Source: Zygophlyctis sp. KS116 (lineage: Eukaryota > Fungi > Chytridiomycota). Taken from it: DNA of 32,000 nt. The notes below the pieces were generated by a model. That model made no database searches, was not told the origin of the DNA, and saw only the letters and a program-made list of their open reading frames with translations. The stretch is taken from the NCBI GenBank assembly GCA_054661495.1, contig BAAFSQ010000015.1, positions 1 through 32,000 of the forward strand, in the 5' to 3' direction. The position numbers and the translations under genes are program-made. Positions 13,839-21,500 of this stretch are shown one piece after another (positions within the stretch are counted from its first letter, which is position 1; the number at the start of each line of letters is the position of its first letter).

Positions 13839-14808
13839 TCAAGAAATCTTGCTGACTAAATACATTCCAGAAAGCATCCCTGCCCACCATACCAGTATAG
13901 AACTATTCCCATAAAGAAAATACTGTGGTAATAGAGTTACTGCAGGCCCAGGACACAATCCTCCTAACCCCCAACCTAGGTATTAACTTCAAGAATAATT
14001 AACCTAGACCAAACAAGATTGAACCAAAAATCAATTTAAAATCAACAATAGTTTTATGAGGAAAATTCCATTTTGAGCATGATAAAGGAGCCTGTAAAGC
14101 ACTTGTAATATAGTGATGCAAAAGTAAATTTGGTAATAGCCCAGACGCAAAAACAACTCCCAAAGATGGATCAATTACTTTAAATAACTTGAAATCATAC
14201 AATGCCAATGATAAATTTAAGAATCCCAAAACCTTTTCAGGATAAATCATTCCACCAATTGATAATCCAATTGCAAACACCATCCCTACAAACCAACTTA
14301 CAAAAGCCATATGAAACTTTTTAGAATTATAAAATCCTATAATTGCACCAAAGACTGCTACTAGTAGTAAAATTTGATTATTTTTAGAAATATTTATAGA
14401 GTTTTCATACTCTAAAACATTATTTTGTAAATCATTTATAAAAAAACGAGTCATCATTGCAGTCATCATAAATGTCAAAACTGCAAGAATAGATCTTTTA
14501 GAAAGTCTTGCCATCCCACATAACCCATGTCCACTAGTACATCCATTCCCCATTGTAACTCCAAAACCAACCAAAAACCCACTTAAACTATTAACCCATT
14601 GATTCTGATTTAATTTTATTTCTTGCTGAAAGAAACCGACCGCCCACATTCCACACAAGAAACTTATTTGCCAGAGTTGCCTTTTAAAAATCGCATTATT
14701 AACAATTCCAGAGATACCAACAACTCTTCCATAAAAGACACTAAAAGACAAGACACAGAGCGACAGTAAGCTTCCTCCTATAAAAGAATCCCATAAAAAT
14801 GCCTTCAT
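13839..14808 (-). CDS. YeeE/YedE (thiosulfate/sulfur-compound transporter) family membrane protein
   Basis: GRVVGISG, GNGCTSGHGLCGMARLSKRS, FAIGLSIGGMIYPEKVLGFL, and after a ~28-nt intron (about 13976-14003) GWGLGGLCPGP. Confidence 0.9.
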
Positions 14809-15007: not shown

Positions 15008-15314
15008 ATGACTGTAAGAACTTTCTTTAATTTCCTAGTTGGCTGTTGATCTCTTAAACCCATCTCCTGCTGCAGAAGCTAGATCACATAAACTTAAACG
15101 ATTAGTTCAATCTCCAAATTCATTTTTTATGGATGTGCGTTGTGCTCAGTGTTTTAACATTACCACAATCTTTTCTCATGCACAAACAGTGGTAACTTGT
15201 AATGGATGTTCAACCGTTCTCTGTCAACCAACAGGCGGTAAAGCTAGATTAACTGGTAATTTTTTTAATTTTAAGTGGTTAGAAGGCTGTTCCTTTAGAA
15301 AGAAGGCATCTTAA
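15008..15314 (+). CDS. RPS27: 40S ribosomal protein S27 (eS27)
   Basis: ATG ACT, intron 15014-15038, then LAVDLLNP...[20 protein letters not shown]...[11 protein letters not shown]...[12 protein letters not shown], intron 15256-15282, then EGCSFRKK. Confidence 0.98.
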
Positions 15315-15332
15315 GAATTTAATTTTCCCCGA

Positions 15333-18300
15333 ATGAGTACAAGTGATGAGTTGCGATACTATTTTACTTCCCTTGAATATGATTATGAGTCTTTTTATGC
15401 TAACCGTCCAGTAATAACTATGACTAAATCTAGTTTTTATTTACATTTCCAAATGCTTCTAGTTTTCAATTAAGTTCAAATGGAAGTTGTAGTTTTAATT
15501 CTACTTTGGATTCTATAACGGTGTCGGCAGGAGGAAGTTTAGATGTGGTTTGTTCTACAGTTGGACTAGTTGTTTTTACAATACTCTCATTATTTGGAAG
15601 AAATACAAGTACAAGTATGTATATTACAATTCATCAAGCTCCATGTTATCAATGGTATTTTGTGGCTTCAAATGCTTTTGAGGAAAATGCAACTACAAAT
15701 TCTAAAAATAATAATGTAAATTTGTTGAGTGATTCTCAATGGTATGCAAGAGCGTGGATTATGGATCTAAATACTGCAAATGAATTAGAATTAAATAATA
15801 CTGCGATAGAACCATCAGATGTAGGATACATTGACTAATTTTAGACTTCTAAACAGTTGACTAGAGGGTACGCGTCGGTGGGACAAGTTCCAGTGATTCA
15901 AGGTTGGGAAAATCTATGTTGTTGGAATGTAGAAATCGATTATTATTCTGAAAAGGCGTATACTTGAAATTACTAAATTTAGATTTTGGAATTTGGGATT
16001 TGAAAATTGGTATCAAGATCAAATTCTTACAGTGACTGGGAATGATGTTACTCTAGTAGGTTGTCAAGTTAAATCAATCCAGCCAAGACTTTATTGGGAA
16101 AAGTTTGATTCAAATTTATTAAAGTCTGCAGTCTCTTTAGCAAATATAGCATCAAATTTCTCAATGTTTACTGAAAAGTGTTACAAGAGTGCTAATATTG
16201 CTTTATCTTCAGTGTATGGGTCTTCTAATTTTGCATTTGCGAATTCAATGGTTTCTAATATGTCAATTTATACAGGATCTCTAAATAGTATTTTATATAG
16301 TGCTGCAATTACAATTAATGGGGTTTTGCTGTTAGGATCTAATGGTTTGGAATTTATGAATAATTCAATCTCAAAAACATTAACTCTAAGTGATTTTCCA
16401 AAAAAATTGCGTTTTGTTGATTACTGTCATTCAAGTAATTTACCAAGCTGGATTTTCTCTGTTGTGACAGCATTTAGTAACACAACTCTGCATATTTCTC
16501 TTGATGGAGGTTATAATTTTGTAAAACAAGTTACATTGAGTCAATTGACTTTTCAAAATAGTGCTAGTGGTGGCTTTATACGTGATGTAACAATACAGCC
16601 TACTTTTAAGAATCTGGCAGTTTTAGTACGTGATGTAACAGGTTTAGATCGTGTTATTACATATGATTTGGAATTTGGGACTATTAAAAATGGATATAAT
16701 TTTACTGGTACAGCAATCGATGCAGGAATTTTAGGTTCTAGTCCTGGACTCAGGGCCTTTTCTTCAGGAGAAATTATTGCATATGGTGACAATCTATTTT
16801 ATAGGTATACCATTTCTTTTTAATTATAGTCCAAATGGAGGCGTGAGCTTTTTCCCATTGGTAGTATCTAAATCAAGCAGTGAATATTTTTCACAAGTAA
16901 CGGATGGTATGGATGGAATATTTGTAGTTCTTACTTCAACCAATAGGTTAGTTTCGATAAGTTACCAACTCAAAGGGTGTTTGTAGGTGATGCAGATATG
17001 ACTTCTCTTACAGAATTGGCAGCAGGGATTCCATATAATGCTGGTATTTTATTCGGTTAATTTCTAGCTGTACATATTGCCTTTGATTTTAAAAATCTGT
17101 TTGTCTATCAGCCGAATGAGTCTGGCCCCCATGTAACTAGGCGCTCAATTCCGATTAAGAATCAGATAATAAGCCCAAAGTATGATTCGTAAAATTTTAA
17201 TGATAGATCTGCTTCTGTAGTGGGAGACACCTGTCCATATTTTAATTTTCAGACAAACTTTACTAGATATTATAATTTAGATATTGGTACCACATTAGTA
17301 GAATTTATCTATAGGAGAATCCGCAAAGTTTTATTTTTCCCTCCTTTTCAGTTCAGAGCTAGAAAACTCGATTGCGGTATTTTTTGGTTATTTACTCTTA
17401 TAGTATGCATTCACCAATCTGAGTTTGATTACTCACTCTCATAACTTTAGTCATATTGGAGGGCCCCCTAGCGTTGCTCAGGCTGGATACGTGGAAATAT
17501 ATCCTGGGAAATCTGCAGAAACAGGAATTGTCGAATTCCGTATGGAGCCGAAACTCTTGAATCTAGCTTGTTCTTCAATGCGCGCTGTAAGATTGCAATT
17601 CCGAATTTATAAAAGTCTGCTACGATCAATGTCGGTTGTCCTCCGTCTAAGACTCTCCACATCATTCCTCCTACTCAGTTTGTGCCTTATCCCCCGACAA
17701 CTCCCAGAATCGATTGGAGTAATTCCCTTGGACACCATGCAGCGCACCCTGCAACAGATTATGATCATCATGAAACACCTACTGCATCTACTGATTGCGA
17801 AAATGCCCCCAGTGTGATAACTCTTAGTCCTGGCTCATGGGTATCAAATTGGTCAGCAGGAACTACTGGTCAGTCGGAGAATGTAAATTTATTGAATAAT
17901 GTTAGGTCATTGCCTACGATTGCTCAAAATATGGTAATCCAATCCGATTATACTATGGTGACCTATTCATGCCCTCTTTTGCCAATTTTAGAGGAGGCGA
18001 ATTTGAGGAATATGTTTACAAAGATATAGCAATCTGGGAAGATTATGGCCAGTCTTCTTTCAGTTTCAATATGACTCAATCTGATGCCGGATGCGTTCAA
18101 GACTCACAATATCTCTCGGATTTTATAACAAATACTACCTCAGATATATCTGAGATTTGGACTCCATCAGTAATTTTTAAACTTAAAATTTAGAATTATG
18201 AAAAGTGCTACGTCGGCAGTAGTCAAACAATTATATCCACAAAGGCATATCCGCTATTGAATGGCACGAATCACAATTCTATCAGATGGGCTGGAGGAAG

Positions 18301-18542
18301 GAATGGATACTACCTATTTTCGGCCCGCGTCATGGATCCTGAACATAGGTATTTTTAAAAACAGTAATGACAGTTTTTGTACTCTTACAGCACATTTTGC
18401 AGTCGAGGTGTATGGTGCTCCACTTTATGCTGGATATCAAGCCGCGATTGTGATAGGAATGATGATAGTGGTTGTAAGCATCCTAGCTGTTTCATACTAT
18501 ATTCAAAGATCAAAACTAGCAAAAAAACAAAAAAATGAATAA
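15333..18542 (+). CDS. CATSPERE: CatSper channel auxiliary subunit epsilon homologue (~950 aa, ~13 short introns, single C-terminal TM)
   Basis: The hand-spliced frame is open throughout and contains, in order: LRYY, CSTVG, PCYQWY, RAWIMDLNTANELELNNTAIEPS-TSKQLTRGYASVGQVP, TCPYFNF..YYNLDIGE, INVGCPP, YDCSKYGNPIRLYY, IAIWEDYGQSSFSFNMTQSDAGC, WTPSNYEKC, YPLLNGTNHNSIRW..GRNGYYLFSARVMDPEHSFCTLTAHFAVEVYG, then TM and a basic tail. These are collinear with motifs I recall from mammalian CATSPERE. Confidence 0.85.
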
Positions 18543-18543
18543 T

Positions 18544-21500
18544 TTAATTTTCTAGAGCTATCTTTAGTTTGTTGAGTTTATCTTCCATTTTTGTCTTTTG
18601 CTGATCTATTTCGCTGATGAGAACTTTGACTTCCGATTCCAGTTGATTTCTTTCCAATTTTATTTTATTTACTTCGATTTCAAGATCTTTGATTTTTCTG
18701 ATCATGGCCTCTCGTTCAGTCTCAAACGTGCCAAATTTCTCTTTTTGCGCCTTCAAATTTAGTTAATATATAGGTACCTCAAATACAATTTTCATATTCA
18801 AATGCTCCGCATCTTTTCGGCGGATCGCCTCCTCTCTCTCATGAATAAGAGCGGCTTCTTTCTTTTTGAATGCTTCAGTCACCTTCAGTACTTCTTGCTC
18901 TATGAGGTTTATACTATGATTTCTTTGTAAAAGTTTCTCGGAAACAGCATCAAGCTCATTGCGCAGTGAGTCGCGCTCAACTTTGTATTCATTAACGATT
19001 GATTGGAAGTGCTTAACAACAGCCTGCTGATTATCTAACTCCTTCTTAATTTCATGCGACACATTTCTCTCATATTCTAGCTGTTCACTCCAATATGACT
19101 CCCTTTTTGAGCTTTCATTTGTGATTAACGAGGATTCCCGCACCTTAAGTTTATAAATAAACAAATACCTTATTTTCCAAGTTTTGCCGCAGTTTCTTTA
19201 AACTGTCGTTCTGATCTTCAAGCATCTGATTCTTGATTTTAATGGTCTATTTTTAGAGGACGAAACAGAAAGTACCTGATTAAGTTCCGCATTTTGCTCT
19301 TCGATCGATTTAATTTGATTTTCCAGCCCTTCAATGCGTTGTTGAATGATGGGCTTTTGAGAATTCAATTCTATTTCCTAGTTATCAAATAATTCCATTT
19401 TTACCATTTTACTGATTTTATTGCAAAGTTCGTATTTTTGATTCTTTAATTCAGATATTTCCTTGGAAGAAGACTCTAAATTGCCCAATATACGAACGTT
19501 CTTTTTTGTGATTTCCTCATATTGTGATTTTGATAATTGCAAGGCGCTTTTTAGCTCTTCGTATTCATTACATTTTTCCTAAATGATCATGAGCAACAAG
19601 GATACATCGTAAATATTTGCAGTAAGTTCAAGCTTTGATTCATGCTCATTTAACTTGACCTTTTGATCTTTTGCTAGATTCGTTAGCTGCTTAATTATCG
19701 AGGTATATTCATCCTCATTGTTTTTAAATCCAGACAATTTCTATTGGTAAATTTAATCACAGCTACCTGTCGCTGATCTTCACATATCTTCTGTAACTCC
19801 ACATATGCAGTACTGATTTGATCATACTTCTCTTTTTCACCTATTATTTCATGTTGCAAAATTTACTATTATAAACCATCCTAAACTCATTTTCTAGATG
19901 ATTATATGCTGTTTGAAGTTTCATAAATTCTGCCCGTGACTCATCCAACTCCTTGCGATGTTGAGTGAGCATAAGTTGAATTTTATCACCCATAGCTTCT
20001 TTCCGATCTTGCTTTTGATATCTTAAATTAATTAAGGTCAATTACAACAATGCATCATTAAGCCGATTCTGATACTTTATATCAACATCAGCAAGGGATG
20101 ATTTTGCCAGCTTCAGTTCCTCATTCAAATTTCGTATTTCTTTTCTTTGAAACTCATCTTGCATTTCCATCTTTATGTTAATTACATTTAAGCAAACCTG
20201 GGTAATTTTAATCTTAAAATGCTCCCTTTCTTTTAAATATTTCAAAGCCAAACGAGATTTTTCCTCCTCTAATGTTTTAATTTTTATTCTTGAGCTGCAA
20301 AGATTATCCTTTACATTAAAATCACAAGTCTGTACCTTGATTGTAGCACTGTCTTTTTTAAGTATTAAATTTTCTTCTTCCATCTTATTTTTATCTTTCA
20401 AGTGATTCTCTTTTTCCATTTTACATTCTTCCAAATCTGCAAACAATTTCTTGATCGACATTTTGGGAGTTTCGTCCTCTGCCGCTTGAAGTCTCCCCTT
20501 AAATTCCGAGTTCAGCAACTTAATCTTCACGGAGATCTAATTTACCTCTAATTTTTTGTTTTTTAAAGTCAACTCTTTAATTTCATCATCTTTTTCTGAC
20601 AAATCTTTAATGAGCCTTGATTTTTGTTCTAAAAGCCCATTATTTTCCCATTTAAGCGTTTTTACCGCTTCCTAAATTTTACAAACTACAATCTACCGTG
20701 GTATTCTTTAAATCTGAATGAATCCTATCAATTTCAGATAGTGAAGTCTCTAATTTCTGTTGAACATTTTCCCTATTATCTCTTTCAATTTGCAAAAGTT
20801 GAGAATGAATTTCCTTTCTTTTAAAAGACTAAAATTACATTATTTTGCGCCGACCTTTGTACCTTTTTGGTCCTATTTTATAAACAAGTATAAAATACAC
20901 TTCTATTTTCTCCTTGACGGAATGATCTAATTTTGGTATTTTACTAGGAACATTGACAATCTCTTTAACTTGCTATCATATTTAGTAAAATCTTAAAACT
21001 CACCATAATATTATCCTTTCTCCAATCCACATATTCCTTTAAATAATCCTGATTTTAAAACTAAATAATTTATACCTTTTCATTGTGCTGTAGTTTTTCT
21101 ACAATTTCTTTTAATAGTTTTTCTAACCCATCTATTCTCTTTTCAGACTCTTGCGACTCTTTATTGCACTTTAATTCTTTAATTTGACTTTCTAATTCCG
21201 TCAATTGATCCAAAACTTGAGAATTATTATTATTTTCAGAGGCTTGCTTTACATTTTCTGATAAATTTGAAATATAATTTTCAATAACTTGTAATTTATG
21301 AGATAAATTCCCAATATCCTTGTCTGGTAAATTTTCTAGACTTGAATTTTCTACATGGTCTGTAAATGAGAAATCAGAATTTGATCCAAAATAAACATTT
21401 CCCAATCTATCTAAACCATCAATACCCATTAATTGAGGAACTAGATTAAACACTTTAATCCTAGAATACTTGTAATCTTGCATAAATTTGTTATGACTCG

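Follow-up and report, generated by a model that had tools for sequence, protein, structure and literature searches.

The CatSpermasome of mouse, a flagellar Ca2+ channel complex, has a CATSPER1-4-3-2 tetramer roofed by a canopy of four large auxiliary subunits; one of these, the epsilon subunit (CATSPERE), pairs with CATSPER2, its ectodomains being needed for assembly (10.1101/2024.11.18.624146). The animal CatSper subunits are mutually dependent for stability (PMC5362262, 10.1101/2024.11.18.624146). According to Chung et al. (2017, PMC5362262), epsilon is as ancient in origin as CatSper1-4, beta and gamma, whereas the delta subunit (CATSPERD) arose later. In the zoosporic fungus Allomyces, CatSper pore genes were reported by Cai and Clapham (2012; cited in 10.1101/230292). 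Cai et al. (2014; cited in PMC5362262) described the complex as a whole as conserved beyond animals, and epsilon was screened in 2017 in 17 eukaryotes including Allomyces (PMC5362262). A 2026 atlas of fungal flagellar proteins contains a CATSPERD/E orthogroup of 15 fungal proteins, specific to flagellated fungi, and also includes CATSPER1-4, B, G, T, EFCAB9 and TMEM249 (PMC13358043). Fungal CATSPERD/E genes are thus already published and annotated, and the gene described here adds one more member to the family. It occupies positions 15333-18542 of a 32,000-nucleotide stretch of DNA (hereafter the window) that begins contig BAAFSQ010000015.1 of the freshwater chytrid Zygophlyctis sp. KS116, and its product is very probably the one auxiliary subunit of the delta/epsilon family in a flagellar Ca2+ channel complex of the CatSper type.

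The predicted product resembles mammalian CATSPERE in length (958 amino acids, against 985 in mouse), in the order of its parts (N-terminal domain, beta-propeller, immunoglobulin (Ig)-like/stem region, one membrane helix and a short tail) and in its ectodomain, which is heavily glycosylated in mammals and predicted to be so here. In contrast to its mammalian counterpart, the chytrid gene comes from a fungus that has zoospores, not sperm, and identity over the aligned propeller is only about 12-14%. The closest described proteins are chytrid homologues in GenBank, namely KAI8815055.1 (Cladochytrium), KAI8918744.1, KAI9349449.1, KAJ3332498.1 (Blyttiomyces) and KAJ3421509.1 (Polyrhizophydium stewartii). 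These align with the window gene from end to end at 28-34% identity and have the same domains, whereas the window gene differs from them in its 13 very short introns, in the 18-nt spacer that separates it from the ribosomal protein gene RPS27, and in lacking the signal peptide that three of them carry.

Gene model and family membership

A shortest-path search over GT..AG introns that kept the reading frame, refined against homologues, yielded one open frame on the forward strand, running from the ATG at 15333 to the TAA at 18540-18542. The gene has 14 exons and 13 introns, all of them GT..AG, and encodes 958 codons. The introns measure, in order, 23, 24, 25, 25, 29, 24, 27, 28, 27, 29, 23, 24 and 25 nt, and 10 of the 13 start with GTA. 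An earlier sequence-only reading of the window had proposed about 13 introns of 23-29 nt and about 950 amino acids, which the refined model bears out. That reading had also noted that the open reading frame (ORF) track fragments the gene, and 15333-18542 of the forward strand is indeed broken up into many short ORFs; prokaryote-style gene callers split genes with 25-nt introns into unannotated fragments. The first automatic splice path, which placed introns at 16961-16986 and 17682-17707 and missed two others, was rejected, since the homologue alignment and the invariant residues fit the 13-intron model. In particular, a family-invariant Gly-Cys pair is restored only when intron 17587-17615 is spliced, and exons 5-9 align with the chytrid homologues, including their invariant residues.

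The spliced product contains 16 cysteines and 19 N-x-S/T sequons. The highest hydropathy window (Kyte-Doolittle 2.56) aligns to the membrane helix of the chytrid homologues and is followed by a 12-residue, mostly basic tail, giving a single C-terminal transmembrane segment with a short tail. An ectodomain rich in N-glycosylation sites and a C-terminal membrane anchor, both expected from the sequence-only reading, are therefore features of the refined model as well.

Queries to protein databases, Pfam, the PDB and fold libraries were made with single exons or genome regions, and the joined model was used locally (translation, MAFFT alignment and a local hidden Markov model, HMM). Pfam family PF22850 (CATSPERD/E_C) matches exons 12, 13 and 14 collinearly, at profile positions 26-104, 111-161 and 164-210, with E-values of 5.6e-9 (36 bits, above the cut-off), 6.6e-3 and 7.4e-3, respectively. 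A six-frame search of the whole genome with this family found this locus only (53.2 bits, E 1.5e-13). In the PDB, exon 12 matches mouse and human CATSPERE (7EEB, 9UBW chain H) with an E-value of 3e-9 and 40.6 bits. When 1.8 billion representative proteins were searched exhaustively with exon 4 by HMMER, 26 relatives were retrieved. Those that are full-length come from chytrids (Phlyctochytrium, Blyttiomyces, Dinochytrium, Polyrhizophydium, Cladochytrium and others) and carry CATSPERE_NTD2, Beta-prop_CATSPERD and CATSPERD/E_C.

A profile built from seven chytrid homologues matches CATSPERE (E 6e-73) and CATSPERD (E 2e-43) in the PDB, and in a six-frame search of the genome its matches are confined to this gene. 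The matching pieces follow one another in order: 15452-15913 corresponds to profile positions 35-173 (52.8 bits), 15972-17297 to 183-619, 17592-17885 to 695-777, 17903-18358 to 776-922, and 18372-18533 to 919-974. The sequence-only reading had listed motifs collinear with CATSPERE from end to end, and this order over profile positions 35-974 agrees with it. Against the joined model, a local HMM of the same seven homologues scored 673 bits over residues 8-955. At the N-terminus, exon 2 matches Pfam CATSPERE_NTD2 (PF22843) weakly (E 0.023; 15 bits, under the 27-bit cut-off), and the aligned chytrid relatives exceed that cut-off with 28-33 bits.

Exon 4 has no direct Pfam match, and a feature search of the ESM Atlas with it returned generic BNR/sortilin-type propeller clusters alone, at scores of up to 0.83, under the useful range. 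The relatives that it retrieves, however, match PF15020 (Beta-prop_CATSPERD). An AlphaFold2 model of the exon based on a 20-sequence alignment is all-beta and forms a partial beta-propeller (predicted local distance difference test score (pLDDT) 79.5, predicted template modelling score (pTM) 0.75). Foldseek listed the CatSpermasome chain 7eeb_F in first place and 7eeb_H in fifth, in the company of many WD40 propellers, and by itself left the CatSper chains close to these. A second look with VIA set 7eeb_H apart: mouse CATSPERE residues 222-498 were the top match, with Z 16.3, a root-mean-square deviation of 4.4 and 244 aligned residues, against Z 14.8 and 195 aligned residues for the runner-up. 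The predicted ectodomain thus contains a beta-propeller, as expected of the family.

Taken together, these matches extend the homology along the whole protein, beginning with the N-terminal domain, continuing over the propeller and ending with the membrane helix. These comparisons support the assignment of the gene to the CATSPERD/E family. A lack of significant matches to CATSPERD/E profiles or structures had been named beforehand as a refutation, and significant matches to both were obtained. The closest named relatives are all chytrids, in keeping with the earlier impression of a fungal-type genome. Metagenome fragments aside, the gene has no close sequenced relative, and its nearest relatives in public protein sets exist solely as pieces of 230-340 amino acids.

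The interval 15333-18542 is a real, transcribed gene. Lake metatranscriptome contigs derived from it were found in two runs (X19 and X20). The X19 contig covers 17814-18101, and from it exactly the 23 nt of intron 11 (17883-17905) have been removed, the sequence being otherwise identical. Another strain, about 98-99% identical, is present in a DNA metagenome from a different study (X4), and the source organism recurs among freshwater metagenomes of several studies. By a rough count, the 36 listed differences between the X4 strain and the window gene comprise 15 synonymous, 13 nonsynonymous and 8 intronic changes, or 2.4% of intron positions and 1.0% of exon positions. Such a pattern is what purifying selection would leave, and it is also in keeping with the exon-intron model.

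The coordinates of the gene and its parts are given in Table 1.

Table 1. Features of the CatSper delta/epsilon gene and its upstream neighbour (positions in the window)
Feature	Position	Strand	Basis or remark
Whole gene, predicted CATSPERD/E-family (epsilon-type) single-pass membrane protein	15333..18542	+	Gene model, family-profile matches
Exon 1	15333..15410	+	Start conserved in related chytrid contig L013; no signal peptide encoded
Exons 2-3, predicted N-terminal domains	15434-15820, 15845-15957 (intron 15821-15844 between)	+	Weak CATSPERE_NTD2 match
Hydrophobic stretch, residues 62-80, Kyte-Doolittle 2.2	15539..15595	+	Hydropathy
Exon 4, 273 amino acids, main part of predicted beta-propeller	15983..16804	+	Relatives, AlphaFold2 model, structure match
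Exons 5-9, remaining propeller and linker	16830-16946, 16976-17043, 17068-17179, 17207-17286, 17315-17376	+	Chytrid alignment; inside profile match 15972-17297
Exons 10-11, before C-terminal domain, conserved V-G-C-P motif	17404-17586, 17616-17882	+	Profile match 17592-17885
Exons 12-14, CATSPERD/E C-terminal domain (Ig-like and stem), membrane helix, short tail	17906-18169, 18194-18348, 18374-18542	+	Pfam PF22850
C-terminal transmembrane helix, residues 926-946	18441..18503	+	Hydropathy, homologue alignment
Mini-introns, first seven of 13	15411-33, 15821-44, 15958-82, 16805-29, 16947-75, 17044-67, 17180-206	+	Gene model
Mini-introns, last six of 13	17287-314, 17377-403, 17587-615, 17883-905, 18170-93, 18349-73	+	Gene model
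RPS27, upstream neighbour, introns 15014-15038 and 15256-15282	15008..15314	+	Stop 18 nt before CatSper ATG

Epsilon or delta

Mammalian CATSPERD (7EEB chain G) shares the PF22850 C-terminal family and the propeller with the chytrid protein, but is without the N-terminal domains that the latter possesses. Several observations would favour an assignment of the window gene to delta specifically, as a CATSPERD orthologue rather than an epsilon gene. The propeller leans weakly that way: by sequence, the exon-4 profile matches CATSPERD alone in the PDB (E 6e-4), and the chytrid relatives match Beta-prop_CATSPERD (up to 45 bits), not Beta-prop_CATSPERE. Furthermore, NCBI names three of these relatives 'cation channel sperm-associated protein subunit delta-domain-containing protein'. 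However, exon 12, which lies in a region common to both paralogues, scores 40.6 bits against epsilon and 17.7 bits against delta (CATSPERD E 0.05), and the full profile of seven homologues gives 249 bits for epsilon against 152 for delta. The epsilon-only NTD2 domain is present in the relatives, and the published origin of delta is later than that of epsilon (PMC5362262). A strictly delta identity is accordingly very unlikely. A mixture of epsilon and delta signals is what a gene older than the delta/epsilon split would show, and the best reading of the comparisons is that the gene is epsilon-type and would represent the state before the duplication. The epsilon assignment of the sequence-only reading is favoured by the C-terminus and the N-terminal domain, both of which look epsilon-like; with its weakly delta-like propeller, the gene fits strict orthology to epsilon less clearly, an unduplicated delta/epsilon gene being the other way to describe it.

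Partner genes and the proposed channel complex

The sequence-only reading had remarked that, if pore subunits were absent from the genome, the gene would be an orphan, and had proposed a search for CATSPER1-4, B and G. The genome of 12.7 Mb contains four single-repeat CatSper-like pore genes, and the window gene is accordingly no orphan. The one on contig C2 has CatSper2 as its only PDB family match (E 9e-10), that on C21 has CatSper3 as its best single-repeat match, that on C8 has an 80-bit match to CatSper1, and that on C217 matches CatSper1 and CatSper4. The selectivity-filter Asp is kept in three of the four pore loops, with the full T-x-D-x-W motif on C8 and C2 and C-A-D-G-W on C21. Domains of the auxiliary subunits were likewise found: CATSPERB_C (beta) on C56 (E 8e-27), CATSPERG_C (gamma) on C1 (E 3e-21), TMEM249 (theta) on C627 (E 1e-10) and CTSRT (C2CD6; tau) on C193 (E 6e-6). 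A very small chytrid genome thus retains nearly the whole conserved CatSper set, in support of the published idea of a complex older than animals that controls flagellar Ca2+ in zoospores.

By analogy with the mouse CatSpermasome, the window protein, with its epsilon-type layout, would place its large glycosylated ectodomain next to beta and gamma, forming with them a canopy above the pore tetramer of four CatSper subunits. The membrane helix of the protein would lie next to the voltage sensor of a pore subunit, as epsilon pairs with CATSPER2 in mouse. Such a subunit would be required for the assembly and modulation of a channel that sets the flagellar beat in zoospores. Formation of the complex, a location in the flagellum and a part in motility or chemotaxis are all suggested by this analogy.

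A family member by descent might instead now have a task unconnected with the CatSper channel, such as that of a surface receptor or an adhesion protein of propeller/Ig type. Divergence of the ectodomain is high, with about 30% identity among chytrids, and one of the pore-like genes has an atypical filter; both would suit such a role. Against it, the best conserved part of the protein is the stem and membrane helix, which is the channel-contacting part in animals, genes for the pore, beta, gamma, theta and tau co-occur in a small genome, and the subunits are interdependent for stability in animals. A role outside the channel is therefore improbable, and an auxiliary subunit of a CatSper-type channel is the reading that we prefer.

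Some results nevertheless weigh against an epsilon-type subunit of a working channel. The pore loop of the C217 gene (L005:2043-2336) reads T-Q-I-G-W, with Ile at the position of the expected selectivity-filter Asp. The animal-trained propeller families PF22844 and PF15020 match nothing directly in the window gene, so that the chytrid propeller, unlike that of mammalian CATSPERE, is missed by the animal Pfam model. On the whole genome, PF15020, PF22844, PF15064 and PF22840, all animal-trained, gave no match, a result that is silent on absence because the controls were unmatched too. The RNA contig from run X20 (17547-17782) is unspliced and keeps the predicted intron 17587-17615, and the junctions confirmed by RNA amount to one; this contig may reflect a retained intron, pre-mRNA or a carry-over of DNA into the RNA library. 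Also unlike mammalian CATSPERE, no signal peptide or hydrophobic N-terminus is encoded, and no upstream exon was found at the locus. Finally, whereas mammals have both delta and epsilon, searches of this assembly with PF22850 and the chytrid profile found one delta/epsilon gene, a count that is weak as a statement of copy number given the fragmentary assembly (1175 contigs).

Two further channel-like genes were seen in the same genome. On C1018 (L006:139-735) there is a voltage-sensor-only protein whose PDB matches are Hv1 proton channels (3wkv, E 1.6e-8; 5oqk). On C221 (L007) an Ion_trans match adjoins an open frame that looks cyclic-nucleotide-binding by eye, making it a candidate cyclic nucleotide monophosphate-gated or HCN-like channel.

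The N-terminus and the RPS27 neighbourhood

A type I ectodomain protein needs entry into the endoplasmic reticulum. The window protein begins about 7 residues ahead of the conserved start of the mature domain, and from about residue 8 onward it aligns with its homologues, of which P0008, P0012 and P0025 carry a signal peptide. The description of the gene as intact and full-length is thus right for the 958-codon open frame and the collinear profile matches, but not for the N-terminus, where the signal peptide is missing. In the published table of fungal CATSPERD/E proteins, SignalP matches one of 15 (PMC13358043).

The start lies close to RPS27, and this arrangement recurs. In a related metagenome contig, L013, whose exon-4 protein is about 66% identical, the gene has the same start and a spacer of 19 nt to RPS27 that is nearly identical in sequence. 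RPS27 stands immediately upstream on the same strand in this genome, in L013, in Polyrhizophydium stewartii and in the genome of P0008; in the last of these the spacer measures 279 nt and the signal peptide is kept. Altogether RPS27 is a neighbour in four other chytrid genomes or contigs (loci including L013:979-1290, L024:2117-3001 and L022:3001-7612). The RPS27 gene of Cladochytrium is convergent with the CatSper delta/epsilon gene and found on its downstream side, and in Phlyctochytrium planicorne RPS27 is not a neighbour of that gene. CutC is found nearby both in L024 and in the window. The 997-amino-acid protein KAL2920026.1 (P0027) of Polyrhizophydium stewartii, which GenBank and UniRef carry under the name '40S ribosomal protein S27', joins RPS27 and the CatSper delta/epsilon orthologue in one model. 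The close spacing of the two genes seems to have misled the annotation.

The shortened spacer raises the alternative that the gene is a decaying or mis-targeted relic, in which collapse of the spacer to 18 nt removed a signal-peptide exon and left a protein that cannot reach the membrane. The signal peptide is missing both here and in L013 and present in other chytrid homologues, and the genome with the 279-nt spacer retains it, as that account would predict. A relic, however, would hardly keep a frame open over 958 codons and across 13 introns, nor share its signal-peptide-less start with a contig as diverged as L013. Introns and synonymous sites hold more than their share of the strain differences, a spliced RNA contig was found, and all partner genes are kept. 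Decay is therefore quite unlikely, and a functional subunit remains the preferred reading.

Other routes to the membrane can be suggested. The hydrophobic stretch at residues 62-80 is common to the window gene and L013, whereas the corresponding segment of other chytrid homologues is an amphipathic strand, and it may be an internal targeting signal. More speculatively, RPS27 exon 2, read in a different frame, contains a short ORF of hydrophobic character (about 15135-15190) that might provide a candidate first exon. Splicing out an unusually long intron, of about 148 nt, could connect it in frame to an acceptor that directly follows the ATG. The spacer and first codons contain a 19-base run that is identical in the window (15315-15338) and L013 (about 1255-1280), and synonymous sites near it have diverged between the two; candidate functions for this run are those of a 3'-end signal, a promoter signal and a splice acceptor.

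Two other sources of an N-terminus were set aside. Read-through of the RPS27 stop was considered because the two genes are in frame here, but the spacer of L013 is one base longer, which puts them out of frame. A signal-peptide exon upstream of RPS27 is unlikely, since a minus-strand gene fills 14200-14808.

These observations can be joined to the mixed delta/epsilon signal in one tentative account, which we regard as possible rather than likely. Chytrids would be in the pre-duplication state, with one subunit taking the delta position as well as the epsilon position, so that the canopy would be the product of three genes and consist of beta, gamma and two copies of this subunit. In the lineage of the window gene, the signal-peptide exon would have been lost as the RPS27 spacer shrank to 18 nt, and a new membrane route, by way of residues 62-80 or of the ORF in RPS27 exon 2, would have taken its place. 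The gene is in any case one more well-supported non-animal member of the CatSper auxiliary subunit family, and its apparently single copy and missing signal peptide raise minor but testable questions on the make-up of the canopy before animals arose.

At the other end of the gene, its TAA stop is followed by a convergent minus-strand coiled-coil gene (ORF 18544-18756 onward). The two stops are 1 nt apart (window 18540-18546), and the 3' ends of the two genes must therefore overlap.

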